DNA of 64,000 nt from assembly GCA_977020255.1 (NCBI GenBank), contig CDROCS010001089.1, positions 1-64,000 of the forward strand, given 5' to 3'. This DNA comes from Obrimoposthia wandeli (Eukaryota). The notes under the pieces are model-generated. The model saw only the letters and a list, made by a program, of their open reading frames with translations, did no database searches and was not told the origin of the DNA. Made by a program: the position numbers and the translations under genes. Below are positions 37,452-45,723 of the stretch, piece after piece (positions within the stretch are counted from its first letter, which is position 1; every line of letters starts with the position of its first letter).

Positions 37452-37529
37452 ATTCTGATACGGCAATAGTTTGCTACTCTTTATCGCGTTACTTAATAAA
37501 AGCAATTCATGAAAGAAGAGGATTTTCCG

Positions 37530-38960
37530 ATGAAAAAGAAGCTAACGACAGCAGCAGGATGCCCGGTATCTGATAACCAAAATGTATTAACAGCAGGGTC
37601 TAAAGGACCAATGTTATTACAAGACGCGTGGTTTTTAGAGAAACTCGCACATTTTAACCGAGAAGTTATTCCTGAGCGCAGGATGCACGCAAAAGGCTCT
37701 GGAGCTTACGGAACATTCACCGTTACCCATGATATTACCCAGTTCTGTAAAGCAGATATTTTTTCCGAGATAGGCAAACAAACAGAACTATTTGCACGTT
37801 TTACAACCGTTGCCGGCGAACGCGGAGCGGCAGATGCTGAGCGAGATATACGCGGCTTCGCACTGAAATTTTACACCCAACAAGGTAATTGGGACATGGT
37901 AGGCAACAATACACCAGTGTTCTTTTTACGCGATCCTCTTAAGTTTCCCGATCTTAACCACGCTGTTAAACGTGATCCACGCACCAATATGCGCAGTGCG
38001 CAAAATAATTGGGATTTTTGGACCTCGCTGCCTGAAGCGCTACATCAAATTACCATCGTAATGAGCGATAGAGGCATCCCTGCCAGTTACCGGGAAATGC
38101 ATGGCTTTGGTAGCCACACTTTCAGTCTCATCAATGCTAACAATGAAAGGGTTTGGGTTAAATTTCATTTCAAATCAAATCAGGGAATCAAAAATTTAAC
38201 TAACCAACAAGCCCAAACGTTGATTGGCAAAGACCGCGAAAGCCATCACGCTGATTTGTATGCAGCGATTGAAGCTAACAACAATCCTTCATGGACATTA
38301 AAAATACAAGTAATGAGCGAAGCGCAGGCCCAAAAATCAGCTTACAATCCCTTTGACCTTACTAAAGTTTGGCCACACGGGGATTTCCCTCTTATTGAAG
38401 TGGGCCAAATTGAACTCAACCGCAATCCTGAAAACTTCTATGCAGAAGTCGAGCAATCAGCTTTTAACCCAGCCAACATTGTACCCGGCATTAGCTTTTC
38501 GCCAGACAAAATGTTGCAAGGGCGCTTGTTTGCCTATGGTGATGCACAGCGTTATCGCCTTGGTGTGAATCACCAGCATATTCCGGTGAATGCACCACGC
38601 TGCCCAGTGCATAGCTATCACCGAGATGGGGCAATGCGCACTGACAATAACTTTGGTAGCACTATTGGCTATCAGCCTAACTCAAAGGATGAGTGGCAGG
38701 AGCAACCAGAGTTTGCTGAACCGGCATTGGCGTTATCAGGTGCTGCTGACCATTGGGATCATCGCGAGGATAAAGATTATTTCTCACAGCCAGGTGCTCT
38801 TTTTAGATTAATGAGCGCTGCGCAACAAACCCTGTTATTCAATAATACCGCTGACTCACTCAGCGGTGTGAGCCTTGATGTGCAAATGCGCCATGTAGAA
38901 CATTGCACCCAAGCTGATCCCGCTTACGGAGCTGGTGTAGCGAAGGCTTTAGGGCTTTAA
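37530..38960 (+). CDS. katA: Monofunctional heme catalase (small subunit type)
   Basis: [50 protein letters not shown]; GAGGA RBS before the ATG at 37530. Confidence 0.95.
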
Positions 38961-39167: not shown

Positions 39168-39385
39168 GCAATGATAATTTTGACATAGCGTACTTATTTT
39201 CAGATGCATAGCCGATAACTACTACCTAGCATAACTTTGATAGAAAAGATGACATACTACACAAGCGATCACAAAAGCCTATACAATCGATAACCAATGA
39301 CTAATACCAACCTTGCTAAATACAAATAAATCTTAAGTCAGTAAGCTGAATAGTGCTGATTTTTTGCGACCATAGGGAAGCTAAT

Positions 39386-39892
39386 ATGCCCAGCCAGTTC
39401 TATTATATAACACTCATGAAGTTTTCAGCGCTGTCGATAGCCACTTTATTAGCAGGCTGCCTAGAGGTCTCTACTAAAAGTTACAGTAACAGCCTGTTTT
39501 CAGACGATACATTTGACTATTGCCTTGCCAGTGGTGGAACCACGCAAGAAAGCTACCCACGAAGTTGCGCTTTAAACGGACGGTTCTATACTGAAAACAT
39601 CAACCAGGCAGATAAATTCGAAAGAATTTCACTAGTGTTTGAAGTAGGCCCTCGAACTAAAACTTGCCAAGGATCTCATTCTGTGGATCTACAATGTTTA
39701 ATTATTAACGGCGAGAATTTCTATGAACAGATCTCAGGATTTGTTCATCAACCAGGGACAACCACAACGATTGAAGTAGAGCGTCTTCAGATTTGCGATC
39801 CAATGGTAATAAACTCGTGCCCTCAAGATATTGGCATTTACCAATATCGCTGGCTGAGAAACATTACTAAAGGCGAGCAAGCATACAAATAG
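39386..39892 (+). CDS. Lipoprotein with DUF4377-like domain
   Basis: Lipobox LLAGC; F..C...GG...ESYPR.C; VGP.T..C..QCL.ING..FY..I.GF. Start at 39386 or 39416. Confidence 0.7.
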   Translation: MPSQFYYITLMKFSALSIATLLAGCLEVSTKSYSNSLFSDDTFDYCLASGGTTQESYPRSCALNGRFYTENINQADKFERISLVFEVGPRTKTCQGSHSVDLQCLIINGENFYEQISGFVHQPGTTTTIEVERLQICDPMVINSCPQDIGIYQYRWLRNITKGEQAYK

Positions 39893-39966
39893 ATATGCAT
39901 TGAATTCTTTCTATCGCGATAAAAATCACCGTAATAAAACCTCCTTTAGGAAGCACTACTATTCAA

Positions 39967-42588
39967 TTAATCTAGACTTGTGAGTAAAAGCCGTATCTCT
40001 TCTGCAGACTTTGGTTTACTAAAGTAATAACCTTGAAAATAATCACATTGATGCAGCGTCAGTGCTATTTGTTGTTGCTCTGTTTCAACACCTTCTGCAA
40101 CCACCTTTATTTTCAAACTTTTTGCCATATTAATGATGGCTTCAACCAGTAATTGATCATTTTCGTTGTTGGTCATTTCATTGATAAACGAACGGTCAAT
40201 TTTAAGTACGTTTACCGGAAAACGTTTTAAATAACCAAGCGAAGAATAACCAGTACCAAAGTCATCCAGTGATATAGAAATTCCCTGTTCTCTCAAGTCT
40301 TGCAAGGTTGAGAAAATATGACTATCGCTATCTTCAATAAACAGGCTCTCAGTGATTTCAAGGTTAAGATGTTGAGGTATAACGCCTGTTTCTTGAATGA
40401 TATTTCTGAGTATATTTGCAAATTCCCGATCTTTAAATTGCAGTGTCGATACATTAATACTCATTTTCATATCGGCTTTAATGAATTCATTCCAATCAGC
40501 TAATTGCCGGCAAGCTGTTCGTAAGATCCACTCACCTATTGGTATTATAAGCCCCGACTCTTCTGCTATTGGTATAAACTTATCCGGCGCTATTCGCCCT
40601 TGTGAAGCATGATTCCAGCGCACCAATGCCTCAACGCCATAGATAGTATTATTTTCGCTTTCGATAATCGGTTGATATTCCAGATACAATTCTTGATTAG
40701 CGATAGCACTTCTAAGCTGCTTTTCCAACGCCAGTGATTCATGCACTGCAACATTCATTTTATCTTCAAAGAAACAGTAAGTGTTTTTCCCTTGCTGTTT
40801 AGCTTTATACATTGACATGTCAGCGCAGCGGATAAGTGTCGATATATCTGAGCCATCTTCAGGATAAACAGCAATACCTACACTACCTGAGATGTGCAGT
40901 ATTTCTGTCAAAGTATTAACGGGTACTGAAAGGCATAGCATAATTTTATCAACCACTTTTTGTAATTGATAGCTTTGCTCAATACCTTCTAACAGCACAA
41001 TGAACTCGTCTCCACCGAACCGTGAACATGTGTCTGTTTCGCGAATAGAGTTACGCAAGCGCGACGCCAGTTCAATTAATAGCTCATCCCCGACAGTATG
41101 ACCAAAGGTATCGTTTATCTTTTTGAAGTTATCAAGATCTATAAACAAAGCCGCAAATTTTGCGTTATTCCTGCGCGTGCGCGCAAGCGTTCGCTCCGCT
41201 CGCTCATTAAATAAATTACGGTTTGGCAGCTGAGTAAGCGGATCATAATTTGCTTGGAAATAAATGGTTTGTTCATTTTTCTTGCGCTCACTAATGTCAG
41301 TAATAATAATGATGTAGCGATAAACTTGGTCATTATTCTTCAGGCTGATAATCGACACTTCTTTCGGTGTCTTTTGATAATCAGCATTGATGGTAGTAAC
41401 TTCTCCATGCCATTTACCTGTGGTATCAATGCTATGAATTATTTCATGATAAATGTCTTCAGGCAGCTTTCTTTTATTAAAAATAGTAGGAGTCTGACCT
41501 ATAAAATTTTCAGATATGAGACCTGTGATACTGGTAAATGCTGGATTAATTGCGATGGCTTTTTTATCTTTATCACAAATAACTACCCCTTCGTTACAAT
41601 GTTCAAAGAAGATAGCTGCATTTTGTAATTGATCTTCAGCTTCAATTCGCTGTTGGATTTCATGCTTGAGTTCCAAGTTGGTTTGTTGGAGCCACTCTTT
41701 ACTTTCTGACACAGACTCCTCAAGTTGAATTTTCTCTTTTACTAGCTTTCCACTACTTGTTGTTAGCTGATAGATCGAGCGTAAAACAACCAGGGTGAGT
41801 AACAAAGAACACAGTAACAGTAAATTGAAATAACGGCCTTTCTTTTGCAGCGAGTGGCTCTGCCTATCCATATAGTACCGATAGCTGTTATCAAGTAATT
41901 GAAGATGAGTTGAGGCAAAAATCTGTGTCAGATTTAGATTAGTATTCACCTTTCCTTTAAGCAGAATCGCCAAGTGTTTAGCTAAAACATTAAAAGTGTT
42001 ACTTACAGAAGGATCTGTATCCGCCATACTTTGTTGTAATATCTGTATCTGCGCATTGATATTTTGTGTGTTTTGAAGATTATCATTAATAAGAAATTTC
42101 AGGATTTCGGAGTTTAACAAATTGAGATTTCCTCTAACCTCACCATCATAATGCTTAGGTAATTTTCTAATTAGCTCGCGATTAAGGTAGGTTGAATACA
42201 TTAGGGAGTTTTTGGTAAAAGCGAGGTTACTTTTATAACGATCTATTAGGAAAATGACTTTCTCATAACTATGTTCATATTTCACCAACAAGGCAGTGAA
42301 TTCATTATTGTCATTTGCAAGTGAGACTGAGGTCGCTGTTTTTAAACTAGCGAGTATTGAACGCTGCCTAGTTATTAGCCCAGTAATGCTGTCAAAATTT
42401 TTAATTCCATTCGTTTGCAGTTTCAGTAAATCTTTTTCAATACTGGCGTGAATAAAATTAAGCGAGCTAAAGCTAGCTTGCGTTGTATCTATATAAGCTT
42501 GAGCTTCATTTTTTTTATGTTCGGTAAAAAACAGCAAAGAAATAGTAATAACAAGCAACCCGATGCTTATAACTAGGGATGACCTCAC
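39967..42588 (-). CDS. Membrane PAS-GGDEF-EAL protein with helical periplasmic (DAHL-like) sensor domain
   Basis: Two TM segments flanking ~230 aa; PAS; RETD I-site plus GGDEF; EALVRW, DDFGTGYSSL, KIDRSF, AEGVE. Confidence 0.92.
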   Translation of the reverse strand: MRSSLVISIGLLVITISLLFFTEHKKNEAQAYIDTTQASFSSLNFIHASIEKDLLKLQTNGIKNFDSITGLITRQRSILASLKTATSVSLANDNNEFTALLVKYEHSYEKVIFLIDRYKSNLAFTKNSLMYSTYLNRELIRKLPKHYDGEVRGNLNLLNSEILKFLINDNLQNTQNINAQIQILQQSMADTDPSVSNTFNVLAKHLAILLKGKVNTNLNLTQIFASTHLQLLDNSYRYYMDRQSHSLQKKGRYFNLLLLCSLLLTLVVLRSIYQLTTSSGKLVKEKIQLEESVSESKEWLQQTNLELKHEIQQRIEAEDQLQNAAIFFEHCNEGVVICDKDKKAIAINPAFTSITGLISENFIGQTPTIFNKRKLPEDIYHEIIHSIDTTGKWHGEVTTINADYQKTPKEVSIISLKNNDQVYRYIIIITDISERKKNEQTIYFQANYDPLTQLPNRNLFNERAERTLARTRRNNAKFAALFIDLDNFKKINDTFGHTVGDELLIELASRLRNSIRETDTCSRFGGDEFIVLLEGIEQSYQLQKVVDKIMLCLSVPVNTLTEILHISGSVGIAVYPEDGSDISTLIRCADMSMYKAKQQGKNTYCFFEDKMNVAVHESLALEKQLRSAIANQELYLEYQPIIESENNTIYGVEALVRWNHASQGRIAPDKFIPIAEESGLIIPIGEWILRTACRQLADWNEFIKADMKMSINVSTLQFKDREFANILRNIIQETGVIPQHLNLEITESLFIEDSDSHIFSTLQDLREQGISISLDDFGTGYSSLGYLKRFPVNVLKIDRSFINEMTNNENDQLLVEAIINMAKSLKIKVVAEGVETEQQQIALTLHQCDYFQGYYFSKPKSAEEIRLLLTSLD

Positions 42589-43586
42589 AACGCCTTCCCC
42601 TGATAAGTACCGCTAAGTGTTTTCAAAAAAGCACTAATTTTATCGATTTCATCTGCCGATATTTCTCGCCCTAACTGATAATCCCCCATGAGTTTGATGG
42701 CATCTTCTAGCGTTTTAACGGTACCATCGTGAAAATAGGGAGCTGTTTTAGCAACATTACGTAACGAGGGAACTTTGAATACATGCTTATCATTTTCATC
42801 TCCCGTTATTTCAAAACGACCTAAATCAATTTCAGCAGTGGATTTATAATCTTTAAACAGCCCTATTTTCTGGAATAAATTGCCACCAATATTTACCCCT
42901 TGATGACAGGATATACAGCCAAGTGAAAAAAATAATTGATGACCTTCTTTTTCCTGCACTGTTAGCGCGTTGGTGTCACCTCTTAAATGCTGATCAAAAC
43001 GAGAGTTAGGCGTGATCAGCGATCTTTCAAAGGTGGCAATTGCATCCTTTACAGATGTTTGATTAATAGCATTTTTGTAAATCAGAGCAAAGGCTTTAAC
43101 ATATTCCGGGTCTTGTTTAAGCTTATCTAAAACGCTTTTCCAATCGCTACCCATGACTAGTGGACTCAATATAACAGCGTTAATTTGCTGCTCTAGTGTG
43201 TTAAATTTTCCACTCCAAAGCTGTGTGAAATTAAAAGCGCTGTTATAGATAGTAGGTGAATTTCGTGTACTTTGCTGATTATGAATACCTACAACTTGTG
43301 GGGCTCTGATGGTGCCTGCTGTCGCTAAGTCATGACAACTTGCGCAAGAAATACTGTTATCTCCAGACAAACGAGTGTCGTGGAACAACAGCTTTCCTAA
43401 TAGCACTTTATCTGGATTTAGATCGATACTAAGTGGGATAGGCGTAATAGCCTCTGAGGCACCAAACTCGTATTTATTATCAGGCGCCTCTCGCTCGCTA
43501 GTATGTTGAGGTTCTTCACTAAAACTCAAGATAAATAGAGTAGCGATAGATATTATTAACCCTAAAATAATTTTTGAATTTTTCAA
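42585..43586 (-). CDS. Diheme cytochrome c peroxidase-family protein
   Basis: CASCH and CISCH heme motifs, LFHDTRLSGD, RNSPT, FKVPSLRNV..TAPYFHDG; overlaps the next gene (GTGA). Confidence 0.9.
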   Translation of the reverse strand: MKNSKIILGLIISIATLFILSFSEEPQHTSEREAPDNKYEFGASEAITPIPLSIDLNPDKVLLGKLLFHDTRLSGDNSISCASCHDLATAGTIRAPQVVGIHNQQSTRNSPTIYNSAFNFTQLWSGKFNTLEQQINAVILSPLVMGSDWKSVLDKLKQDPEYVKAFALIYKNAINQTSVKDAIATFERSLITPNSRFDQHLRGDTNALTVQEKEGHQLFFSLGCISCHQGVNIGGNLFQKIGLFKDYKSTAEIDLGRFEITGDENDKHVFKVPSLRNVAKTAPYFHDGTVKTLEDAIKLMGDYQLGREISADEIDKISAFLKTLSGTYQGKAL

Positions 43587-43824
43587 AATAAACAGTAACC
43601 ATTTTATAATTAAAGTAATTTTTGAATTAATAGAATATCGTAAAAAAATCAGCGGGTCTATGTTTAGCCCTGATGATTCAAGATCAGCATGACTATCAAT
43701 AATTGGCTTTTTGTCAAAATTGAATCTAGTATTTGTTTATACGCGGCTGATCCCTCGTAAATTTAAAATGTATAAAGGGCAAAGCTAGCCTGCCCAAAGT
43801 TTACTTAACTGGTTATTTCCACCC

Positions 43825-45723
43825 TCATTCTAACTGCGCTTGCCACATTTGATAGTATCGGCCTTTACGCTGCAACAAACCCGAATGAGTACCTTGCTCT
43901 AAAATTTCACCTTGCTCAAGCACTACAATTTGATCCGCATCCACCACCGTTGATAATCGATGTGCAATGATAATTACCGTGCGATCACGTCCCATCTGCT
44001 GCAAGCTAAGCTGGATATCACGTTCAGTTTGGGTATCAAGCGCAGAAGTTGCTTCATCGAGCAATAAGATAGGGGCGTTTTTTAAAATGGTGCGCGCGAT
44101 GCCAACGCGTTGCTTTTCACCACCTGATAACTTTAAACCTCGCTCACCTACTTTAGTGTCATAGCCATCTGGTAATTGCATAATAAAATCATGCACCTTC
44201 GCAGCTTTTGCCGCCTCTTCAACTTCTGCTACATTCGCTTTCGGATTACCATAATGAATGTTGTAATAAATACTATCGTTGAATAACACGGTATCTTGTG
44301 GCACCACACCAATTTGCTGTTGTAAACTTTGCTGAGTTACATCTCGTACATCTTGCCCATCAATTAGTAGTGCACCTTGATTGATATCGTAAAAGCGGAA
44401 TAACAAACGCCCAATTGTCGATTTCCCTGAGCCAGAAGACCCTACAATAGCCACGCTTTGCCCGCCTTTGATGTGTAAGTTCACGCTTTTTAGAATTGGC
44501 CTGACGGCCTCATAGGCAAAGCTGACGTTACGCAGCTCTATTTGTGCGTTCCCAATTTTAATTTGCTGCGCATCTTTTTTATCTGTAACTTCTGCGGGCT
44601 GCTCCAATAAACCAAACATTTCTGCCATATCAATTAATGATTGCCTGATTTCTCGATAGACAAACCCCAGTAACCCCAAAGGCTGCATAACCTGCATCAT
44701 GTAGGCATTCACCATCACAAAACCACCAACAGTCAATATACCACTAGCAACATCTTTCGCCGCTAAAATGAGCGCACAAACCAAACCCAAATTTATAATA
44801 AATGCTTGACCTAAATTGAGTAATGCTAGTGATCTGATCGTTTTAATCGCTGCTTTTTCATAACCTTGCATTGATTCATCGTAACGGTTTGTTTCTCTTG
44901 CTTGAGCATTAAAATATCTAACGGTTTCAAAGTTTAGCAAACTATCGATGGCTTTTTGATTGGCATCGCGATCTTTATCATTCATCTCTTTGCGGATTTT
45001 CAAGCGCCACTGCGTCACTGCTGTGGTAAACCACACGTAACAAACCACTGTCACGCTAATAACTAACAAATACCAAGCGTCAAACAGGGTTACTAAGACG
45101 AAAGAGATCATCAGTAATTCAAGGATCAGTGGGCCTATATTAAACAGCATAAAGCGCAACAGAAACTCAACGCCTTTTACGCCTCTTTCTATTATCCGGC
45201 TTAAGCCCCCTGTTTTACGTGAGATGTGATAACGCATTGATAACTGATGGATATGAGTCATCGTTTCAAGAGACAGTGTGCGTAGTGCACCTTGCCCAAC
45301 ACTGGCAAAAATCACATCGCGCAACTGCTGAAAAAGTACATTCATCAATCTTGATAAGCCATAGGCAACTGTCAATCCTACTGTCCCTAAAAGTAGCACC
45401 CAAATGGCACCTTGCTCAGCTCCTGTTGAAGCGACGACAGAATTTGCTAATGGATTTGAAACAGCTAGTGCATCTACTGCTGATTTGTAAAAAAAAGGTG
45501 TGGCGACCGCTATCACCTTAGCCAACAACAATACGCTCATCGATAGTATTACACGCACCTTAGTTGAGCGATTATCTTTAGGCCAAAAGTAAGGTAATAC
45601 CCTTTGGATTATTTGCCAAGCAGAAGCCTCTTTATTTGTGACACTTTCACTGTAAGCACTCATGTTTTCACTTGCGAAATGTTCATCTGTTTTAACAGCA
45701 ATCTTTTCTTTAGCGGTTGTCAT
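43825..45723 (-). CDS. ABCB-type (Atm1/HMT1-like) exporter, fused permease-ATPase
   Basis: YHISRKTGGLSRIIERG, AIDSLLNFETV, GSSGSGKST, GERGLKLSGGEKQR, LLDEATSALD. Confidence 0.92.
   Translation of the reverse strand: MTTAKEKIAVKTDEHFASENMSAYSESVTNKEASAWQIIQRVLPYFWPKDNRSTKVRVILSMSVLLLAKVIAVATPFFYKSAVDALAVSNPLANSVVASTGAEQGAIWVLLLGTVGLTVAYGLSRLMNVLFQQLRDVIFASVGQGALRTLSLETMTHIHQLSMRYHISRKTGGLSRIIERGVKGVEFLLRFMLFNIGPLILELLMISFVLVTLFDAWYLLVISVTVVCYVWFTTAVTQWRLKIRKEMNDKDRDANQKAIDSLLNFETVRYFNAQARETNRYDESMQGYEKAAIKTIRSLALLNLGQAFIINLGLVCALILAAKDVASGILTVGGFVMVNAYMMQVMQPLGLLGFVYREIRQSLIDMAEMFGLLEQPAEVTDKKDAQQIKIGNAQIELRNVSFAYEAVRPILKSVNLHIKGGQSVAIVGSSGSGKSTIGRLLFRFYDINQGALLIDGQDVRDVTQQSLQQQIGVVPQDTVLFNDSIYYNIHYGNPKANVAEVEEAAKAAKVHDFIMQLPDGYDTKVGERGLKLSGGEKQRVGIARTILKNAPILLLDEATSALDTQTERDIQLSLQQMGRDRTVIIIAHRLSTVVDADQIVVLEQGEILEQGTHSGLLQRKGRYYQMWQAQLE

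Follow-up and report, generated by a model that had tools for sequence, protein, structure and literature searches.

Why should a heme protein of the peroxidase family be encoded in direct overlap with a membrane-bound cyclic di-GMP (c-di-GMP) enzyme? The question is raised by a 64,000-nucleotide stretch of DNA from Obrimoposthia wandeli (GenBank assembly GCA_977020255.1, contig CDROCS010001089.1, positions 1 to 64,000 of the forward strand), which we call the window. A gene for a diheme cytochrome c of the bacterial cytochrome c peroxidase family (bCCP, also CCP below) overlaps there with a gene for a membrane protein, hereafter the sensor, that carries a periplasmic DAHL domain and cytoplasmic PAS, GGDEF and EAL domains. 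The pairing of CCP and DAHL genes is near-obligate when approached from either side, the two genes are translationally coupled, and together they constitute one module. We consider it reasonably probable that the overlapping genes of the window specify a single periplasmic sensing cassette, in which the cytochrome is the co-receptor of the DAHL sensor. The anatomy of the locus, the substitutions in the heme pocket, the conserved pairing, the shuffling of outputs and the purifying selection described below are established.

The overlapping gene pair

The features of the two genes are as follows, with positions numbered along the window.

42585-43586 (-): bCCP-family diheme cytochrome c gene, 333 aa, TTG start, from the list of open reading frames (ORFs) and a Pfam match to CCP_MauG (PF03150, E 1.3e-53)
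43518-43586 (-): predicted Sec signal peptide, residues 1-23, with a Lys-rich start, a hydrophobic core and SFS before EE, judged by eye from the translation
43332-43346 (-): CASCH, first heme motif, residues 81-85, assigned to the peroxidatic (P) heme by alignment to the first CxxCH of solved bCCPs
43146-43223 (-): distal-pocket loop, residues 122-147, from ungapped PDB alignments and pocket signatures
42903-42917 (-): CISCH, second heme motif, residues 224-228, assigned to the electron-transfer (E) heme from the translation and the pocket and motif signatures
42687-42689 (-): Met300, opposite the axial Met ligand of the E heme in the alignment to solved bCCPs and invariant in the homologue alignment
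42585-42588 (-): GTGA, the 4-nt overlap of the sensor start codon and the cytochrome stop codon, read from the sequence
39967-42588 (-): gene for the membrane DAHL-PAS-GGDEF-EAL protein (the sensor), 873 aa, from Pfam and motifs in the translation
42523-42576 (-): predicted transmembrane (TM) helix 1, about residues 5-22, a hydrophobic stretch that is helical in the AlphaFold2 model
41830-42522 (-): periplasmic DAHL domain, about residues 23-253, from the Pfam DAHL match at residues 43-253, the AlphaFold2 model and conserved columns
41764-41829 (-): predicted TM helix 2, about residues 254-275, a hydrophobic stretch
41287-41592 (-): cytoplasmic PAS domain, residues 333-434 (Pfam PAS_9, 3.6e-11)
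40783-41253 (-): GGDEF domain, residues 446-602, with the GGDEF motif and RxxD I-site (Pfam 2.6e-51)
40012-40722 (-): EAL domain, residues 623-859, with EAL, DDFGTG and EGVE motifs (Pfam 1.7e-80)
39939-39954 (-): terminator-like hairpin just 3' of the sensor stop codon, weakly indicated by a consensus scan

A previous description of this locus, made from the DNA letters and translated ORFs and called here the sequence-only reading, reported a CCP-family gene overlapping a gene for a TM-periplasmic-TM-PAS-GGDEF-EAL protein, and the ORFs, the Pfam matches and the GTGA at 42585-42588 all agree with this arrangement. The periplasmic helical domain that it called DAHL-like matches the Pfam DAHL model with 59 bits (gathering cutoff 38, E 6.6e-16). 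The GGDEF, RxxD, EAL and DDFGTG motifs that it listed as intact can all be read in the translation, with the RxxD located five residues before the GGDEF motif. EGVE is also present, and motifs and Pfam together assign the sensor to the dual GGDEF-EAL proteins. The cytochrome likewise retains both CxxCH motifs and the Ca-site motifs RNSPT and TAPY (within TAPYFHDG), as had been noted.

Conserved pairing and exchangeable outputs

We examined the association of the two genes from both directions. On the CCP side, one genome per species was scanned with an aligned seed of the window cytochrome (the query) and its nine closest homologues, and the best 80 matches (42-57% identity) were inspected. 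The next downstream gene codes for a DAHL membrane protein at 74 of these 80 loci, and these 74 span 11 named phyla. All 13 of the downstream proteins scanned with Pfam score above the DAHL gathering cutoff. The six exceptions comprise two contig ends, two cyanobacterial CCPs, one triheme YhjA-type enzyme and one CCP that lies beside SseC-like genes and lacks the catalytic Glu discussed in the next section. The cyanobacterial CCPs (L001:5378-7361 and L011:6842-8820) fall within the DAHL-linked clade and have the full canonical pocket, and at both loci a substrate-binding protein of the OpuAC type takes the downstream place of a DAHL receptor. The Glu-less CCP (L075:4732-7942) is of the FNW...VM type, has no DAHL neighbor and is found downstream of two SseC-like (translocon-like) ORFs.

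On the DAHL side, metagenome contigs were scanned with an alignment of eight DAHL-only sequences and the pattern FKSxN[AS][VIL]L[KRN]N, and the best 80 matches were again taken. The eight closer sequences were used because an alignment of 20 sequences has no stretch sufficiently conserved for seeding. A CCP ORF ends at the DAHL start in 72 of the 80 loci. Six others have too little upstream sequence and two lack a CCP, which leaves 72 of the 74 loci that can be judged. The two CCP-less loci (L129:924-2438 and L137:1484-3007), which alone among the 80 metagenome loci clearly break the rule, come from one assembly and encode the same DAHL protein with all family motifs. On one of these two contigs, a poly(A)-polymerase-like gene occupies the upstream position in place of the CCP gene.

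A 4-nt overlap of start and stop codons is seen in 123 of 145 CCP-DAHL pairs (85%). The CCP-DAHL cassette was defined from 146 pairs, and the window pair conforms to it, with the 4-nt overlap and a DAHL domain that scores above the gathering cutoff between two TM helices. No natural fusion of the two proteins occurs among the loci scanned, where seemingly long ORFs are over-extended starts in another frame. In a Sulfurimonas metagenome-assembled genome (MAG; L058:1653-4461), the receptor is divided between two ORFs with about 95 nt between them, one for a DAHL part of 216 aa and one for a PAS-PAS-GGDEF-EAL part of 687 aa, which reflects either a frameshift or stop introduced by assembly or a naturally split receptor.

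The output domains of the CCP-linked DAHL proteins are diverse. They include histidine kinases (45), hybrid kinases with receivers and Hpt domains (35), GGDEF-EAL (38), GGDEF alone (4), class III nucleotide cyclases (5), SpoIIE/PP2C phosphatases (4) and signaling domains of methyl-accepting chemotaxis proteins (2). Mapping these classes on the cytochrome tree requires at least 19 to 26 changes of output. The usual signature of a sensory module is a constant two-part input with interchangeable outputs. The retention of both the pairing and the overlap through at least 19 output swaps is what would be expected if CCP and DAHL together form a sensory input, and does not suit a co-regulated enzyme. 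The sequence-only reading had proposed that the cytochrome and the c-di-GMP enzyme form a sensory module. The pairing, the overlap and the output swaps support one conserved module, although not with loss of the catalytic Glu as its hallmark.

Among the kinase-type cassettes, those at loci of the fluorescent group of Pseudomonas (L017, L022, L030, L048, L052-L054, L056, L057, L061, L063 and L077) pair a CCP with a DAHL kinase of about 605 aa. The phosphoacceptor region of this kinase has no Pfam HisKA match in L053, the one scanned, and no match to the HisKA seed in the others. At L053, the one locus checked, no response regulator adjoins the pair. The CCPs of these Pseudomonas loci keep the Glu and have Val at the pocket Pro.

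No third gene is conserved around the kinase-type cassettes, whose neighbors vary. In the window, 1 kb separates the stop codon of the sensor gene from the end of a catalase gene (37509-38960, +), just as the sequence-only reading had it. Its presence is lineage-specific, being shared with two syntenic Oceanospirillaceae relatives and absent from the other 160 loci, and we therefore rule out catalase as a part of the module. Between the catalase and sensor genes lies a gene for a small DUF4377 protein (39353-39892, +) that is convergent with the sensor gene. This gene is kept in both syntenic relatives, and its ratio of nonsynonymous to synonymous substitution rates (dN/dS), about 0.19, makes it the fastest of five genes compared. 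On the other side of the pair is a gene for an MsbA-like ABC exporter (43825-45723). A G+C-rich inverted repeat (GGGCA...TGCCC, then TTT; 43774-43797, -) that the consensus scan does not report is located just after it. This repeat at the end of the exporter gene suggests that the exporter is transcribed apart from the cytochrome-sensor pair. A promoter scan of the locus returned fewer hits than shuffled controls.

One CCP-DAHL pair is already known from the literature. In Campylobacter jejuni, the CCP homolog gene docA is located immediately upstream of docB/tlp10 (PMC3156733), and a 2026 paper describes the same genes, cj0020c and cj0019c, as overlapping and translationally coupled (PMC13462783). 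Tlp10 is also where the DAHL domain was originally reported (work cited in PMC9796306). Mutants of docA colonize chicks poorly, and the two CCPs of C. jejuni make no contribution to H2O2 resistance (PMC3156733). This pair resembles that of the window in that the CCP gene precedes and overlaps the gene for a DAHL receptor; both genes are needed for chick colonization, and the CCP has no role in H2O2 resistance. It differs in having a chemoreceptor output instead of GGDEF-EAL. The link between DocA and Tlp10 is taken here from papers only, because the 120 best homologs of a Campylobacterales CCP include no Campylobacter, the matches being relatives from Sulfurimonas and Arcobacter.

The distal heme pocket and the loss of glutamate

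In a HMMER search against solved structures, the closest relatives of the window cytochrome are canonical bCCPs (E 3e-77 to 1e-56), with MauG at about 1e-18. The printed alignments to 9qdt, 1iqc, 3o5c and 1nml (E 3e-77 to 4e-64) are gap-free across the distal loop, and in all four Val144 of the query stands opposite the Glu of the conserved 'EM' motif. The sequence-only reading had assigned this Val (codon GTC, 43155-43157, -) to the position of Glu114 in the Pseudomonas aeruginosa enzyme, which a proper alignment with a Glu at the distal site would have contradicted; the solved bCCPs bear out the Val. Its view of the loop needed refinement elsewhere, since the catalytic Gln104 corresponds to the second Q of 'EQQ' and is kept, whereas Phe93 and Pro108 have also changed. 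In P. aeruginosa numbering, the pocket residues F93, W94, Q104, P108, E114 and M115 correspond to Leu123, Trp124, Gln134, Val138, Val144 and Met145 of the query, or LWQVVM versus FWQPEM. All three altered cavity residues (Phe93 to Leu, Pro108 to Val and Glu114 to Val) have become aliphatic.

Most other characteristics of a bCCP are in place. The protein has two CxxCH motifs, a PF03150 match and an N-terminus resembling a signal peptide, and its alignment to solved bCCPs predicts a His/Met E heme with Met300 as ligand, the inter-heme Trp124 and the Ca-site residues. The E-heme Met is kept in nearly all relatives of the cytochrome. No His falls at the column of the distal His that ligates the resting P heme in some bCCPs; the query has Ile there and a His one residue later, and most of the listed relatives have neither. 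Thus, the window cytochrome resembles the canonical enzymes (P. aeruginosa CcpR, Shewanella oneidensis CcpA and those of Nitrosomonas europaea and Neisseria gonorrhoeae) in its fold and length as judged by sequence, its two c hemes, Met-ligated E heme, bridging Trp and Ca site. It is unlike them in the three cavity substitutions, the lack of an aligned distal His and the location of its gene in an operon with a sensor. A structural study of the N. gonorrhoeae bCCP gives the conserved P-heme cavity as Phe, Gln, Pro, Glu and Met, where the query has Leu, Gln, Val, Val and Met, and single-residue Glu or Gln variants of the enzyme are inactive (PMC10094543).

Given a pocket made hydrophobic by Leu, Val and Val, and the absence of the acid-base Glu, the window cytochrome probably has little activity as a peroxidase and is retained as a sensor of the binding or redox type. 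Gas-binding heme sensors typically have a hydrophobic distal pocket. The sequence-only reading had suggested that the protein may no longer be a peroxidase, which fits this copy because the Glu is missing. It does not extend to the module in general, as became clear when pocket signatures were scored in 141 cytochromes with a verified DAHL partner. Of these, 120 (85%) retain the Glu and 87 (62%) have the full FWQPEM signature. The 54 that depart from it include 21 in which Val for Pro is the only change. The Glu is absent from 21 (15%), where V, I, L, M, R, S, T, A or K replaces it and the Phe or Gln is often altered as well.

On the CCP tree, the state of this residue has changed at least nine times, and five of these changes are forced by well-supported branches. 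The proposal that the DAHL context goes together with loss of Glu114 was thus contradicted by the comparison, and we rule out this loss as a mark of the context; it is a recurrent minority state. Because 120 of the 141 keep the Glu and 87 the whole pocket, a heme that reacts with peroxide most likely underlies the general module, and the Val form is a derived minority.

Variation in the pocket is itself distinctive. Among 120 homologs of a YhjA-type triheme peroxidase, sampled over a similar identity range, 119 read FWQPEM and one has Lys for Glu. The 120 best homologs of the query include 16 without Glu (Fisher p 1.7e-4 against this control, uncorrected for relatedness). Judged from these alignments and by comparison with the YhjA-type enzymes, freedom to vary in the catalytic pocket is confined to the sensor-coupled clade.

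These counts bear on a simpler explanation, in which the cytochrome does the usual work of a periplasmic peroxidase, in detoxification or respiration, and shares no more than a transcript with a receptor whose DAHL domain senses small molecules alone, the enzyme being a local helper or a regulated product. The 62% of DAHL-linked CCPs with a full pocket, which also have the Met ligand, Trp and Ca site, are consistent with such a role. So are a part for H2O2 in respiration, mentioned as a possibility for the C. jejuni CCPs (PMC13462783), and the reported direct binding of several ligands by Tlp10 (work cited in PMC9796306). However, this explanation does not say why the pairing is near-obligate even where the receptor is a chemoreceptor, a cyclase, a PP2C phosphatase or a c-di-GMP enzyme, types of protein with no direct control over transcription of the neighboring gene. 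The 4-nt overlap in most pairs and the recurrent loss of Glu under purifying selection are also left unexplained, and the C. jejuni CCPs add nothing to H2O2 resistance. We regard a merely co-transcribed peroxidase as unlikely.

Within the lineage of the window, the orthologue in L081 (81% identical) has the same LWQVVM pocket, while that in L082 (85%) still has the Glu. Since this closest orthologue retains it, the loss in the window lineage is recent. Between the two Val-bearing copies, dN/dS is 0.16 over 314 codons for the cytochrome and 0.17 for the DAHL domain, compared with 0.10 for the PAS-GGDEF-EAL part and 0.04 for catalase. The value for the cytochrome indicates that the Val form is maintained rather than decaying.

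In the Oceanospirillaceae MAG that carries L082 (L082:2727-3696), the CCP orthologue has a 44-nt deletion that corresponds to 43296-43339 of the window. It removes the end of the first CxxCH, shifts the frame and splits the gene into two ORFs, and the downstream DAHL-GGDEF-EAL gene is intact. Either the deletion is genuine and the gene a pseudogene, or the assembly is at fault. It nonetheless raises the prospect that the cytochrome is decaying in this lineage, in which case the change of Glu to Val and the other pocket changes would be early pseudogenization and the sensor would work alone. The alteration of three of the five variable pocket residues in the window copy points in the same direction as the deletion. 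However, the window and L081 genes are intact, share their pocket and evolve under the constraint just described, and the heme motifs, Met ligand, Trp, Ca motifs and 4-nt overlap are all retained. The deletion, moreover, comes from a MAG, where it may be an artifact. Decay is consequently improbable in our judgment.

The DAHL domain and a possible mechanism

An AlphaFold2 model of sensor residues 1-290, made with 74 aligned homologs, is all-helical and has a predicted local distance difference test score (pLDDT) of 94. Its best matches among solved structures are the helical bimodular domain (HBM) of McpS (E 8e-4), the TorS sensor domain (4e-3, 3i9y) and PilJ, and the TorS matches include the TorS-TorT complexes 3o1h-j. 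Five residues, D66, K119, N127, S128 and H205 in query numbering, are near-invariant, each being present in 66-70 of 72 CCP-linked sequences. All five are found in the window sensor.

These five residues are one reason to consider another interpretation of the pairing. The cytochrome could be a maturation enzyme in the manner of MauG or MbnH, with the sensor as its substrate, such that H2O2-driven oxidative modification of a DAHL residue makes or switches a cofactor or cross-link. MauG and MbnH are encoded beside the proteins that they modify, and they are also the top NCBIfam models for the cytochrome. The scores, however, are far below the cutoffs (197 versus 363 for MbnH, TIGR04039; 138 versus 444 for MauG, TIGR03791), and a Pfam scan of the neighborhood detected no mau or mbn genes. 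The E heme has Met at the position of the MauG Tyr ligand, and the best solved relatives are canonical bCCPs by a wide margin of E values (about 1e-77 versus 1e-18 for MauG). The invariant DAHL residues are Asp, Lys, Asn, Ser and His, not the Trp, Tyr or Cys that are usually oxidized. Furthermore, the 15% of members that lack Glu, the window copy included, are without a residue that has the same role in MauG as in bCCPs (PMC10094543). Maturation of the sensor by the cytochrome is thus a doubtful prospect, and we return to the co-receptor reading.

As VirA shows, another periplasmic protein can supply the signal of a DAHL domain. When the DAHL domain of a Rhizobium CCP-linked kinase was used in a tblastn search of plasmids, the 188 records recovered were mostly Agrobacterium VirA, with 38% identity. 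The periplasmic domain of VirA is itself a Pfam DAHL domain (4e-38), and it docks the sugar-binding protein ChvE. The resemblance to the window pair is therefore one of domain and of docking with a periplasmic partner. The differences are that ChvE binds sugars, that no CCP gene lies upstream of virA on Ti plasmids (L164:3447-5948), and that only one of the five near-invariant residues survives in VirA, which has Arg for the Asp, Gly for the Lys, Asp for the Asn and Glu for the His. This single lineage suggests that the invariant residues matter for the cytochrome-dependent mode. A Sinorhizobium plasmid (L163:2531-6038) carries, in order, genes for a response regulator, a CCP and a VirA-like kinase.

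Other systems offer partial parallels. In TorS-TorT, and also in LuxQ-LuxP, a stacked helical periplasmic sensor domain takes its signal from a separate periplasmic protein. The TorS match is one of fold alone (13-16% identity), and TorT is a trimethylamine N-oxide binding protein without heme. The H-NOX and NosP proteins are separate heme proteins encoded beside a kinase or GGDEF-EAL enzyme whose activity they control by ligand state. Unlike the window cytochrome, which is a periplasmic c-type diheme member of the peroxidase family beside a transmembrane receptor, they are cytoplasmic b-type proteins of an unrelated fold that sense NO. YfiR is a small periplasmic protein that regulates the membrane c-di-GMP enzyme YfiN (DgcN) through its periplasmic domain in response to periplasmic redox. 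In this case the regulator is free of heme and of unrelated fold, and the periplasmic domain of YfiN is PAS-like, not DAHL.

Contact between cytochrome and sensor, the direction of signaling and the nature of the signal are matters that we infer. In the mechanism we propose, the exported diheme cytochrome would be made in step with the inner-membrane sensor. It would then dock on or act on the helical DAHL domain, or change within an existing complex. The state of its heme, meaning the oxidation state or the distal ligand, would be relayed through the membrane to the PAS-GGDEF-EAL part and would set the level of c-di-GMP. In members with a canonical pocket, the heme state might be set by the balance between oxidation by H2O2 and re-reduction by periplasmic donors. 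With the LWQVVM pocket, poor cleavage of the O-O bond is expected, and signaling might proceed by ligand binding or redox state alone. Because most family members have a heme pocket competent for peroxidase chemistry, the cassette most likely responded originally to periplasmic H2O2, set against the supply of reductant.

Several points weigh against a co-receptor role. Gene adjacency cannot prove that the cytochrome touches the DAHL domain. The 97% figure obtained from the DAHL side may overstate the rule, because each search considered only the best 80 matches and the DAHL motif was drawn from CCP-linked members, and VirA shows that exceptions to the pairing exist. The Tlp10 DAHL domain is reported to bind small ligands directly (work cited in PMC9796306), which would make a protein co-sensor unnecessary. 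The DAHL-linked CCPs that retain Glu, 85% of the total, could be active peroxidases that serve some purpose unrelated to sensing, and in kinase-type members the CCP could simply belong to an autoregulated operon. Finally, the L082 deletion could mean that the cytochrome is dispensable in the window lineage.

We found no account of CCP-DAHL pairing beyond C. jejuni, or of a connection between CCPs and the entire DAHL family, in the literature searched, which did not extend to many subscription papers. Genome papers on Fe-oxidizers do not mention it, and the terms 'histidine kinase', 'neighborhood' and 'sensor' do not occur in a paper on the bCCP/MauG sequence network. The cassette thus appears to be undescribed except for a one-line, speculative suggestion of peroxide signaling for C. 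jejuni docA-tlp10.

More tentatively, bCCP-type cytochromes and DAHL receptors may represent a widespread and unrecognized class of periplasmic heme co-sensors in at least 11 phyla. Lineages with a hydrophobic pocket, among them the Leu/Val/Val form of the window, may have been retuned from peroxide to another ligand or redox signal, and VirA may have exchanged the cytochrome for ChvE. If true, this would provide a signal source for the DAHL receptor family, whose inputs are mostly unknown, and would explain how DocA can matter in colonization while giving no protection from H2O2, as well as its coupling to Tlp10. It would also place VirA in an evolutionary series that begins with cytochrome-coupled ancestors. 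The H2O2 sensors known from bacteria, OxyR and PerR among them, are located in the cytoplasm, and the cassette would be a dedicated bacterial sensor of periplasmic peroxide or redox state. For enzymology, the clade gives natural variants under selection, with the catalytic Glu replaced by Val, Ile, Leu, Arg, Ser or Met. The window pair is a compact test case for these ideas because its c-di-GMP output is easy to measure.

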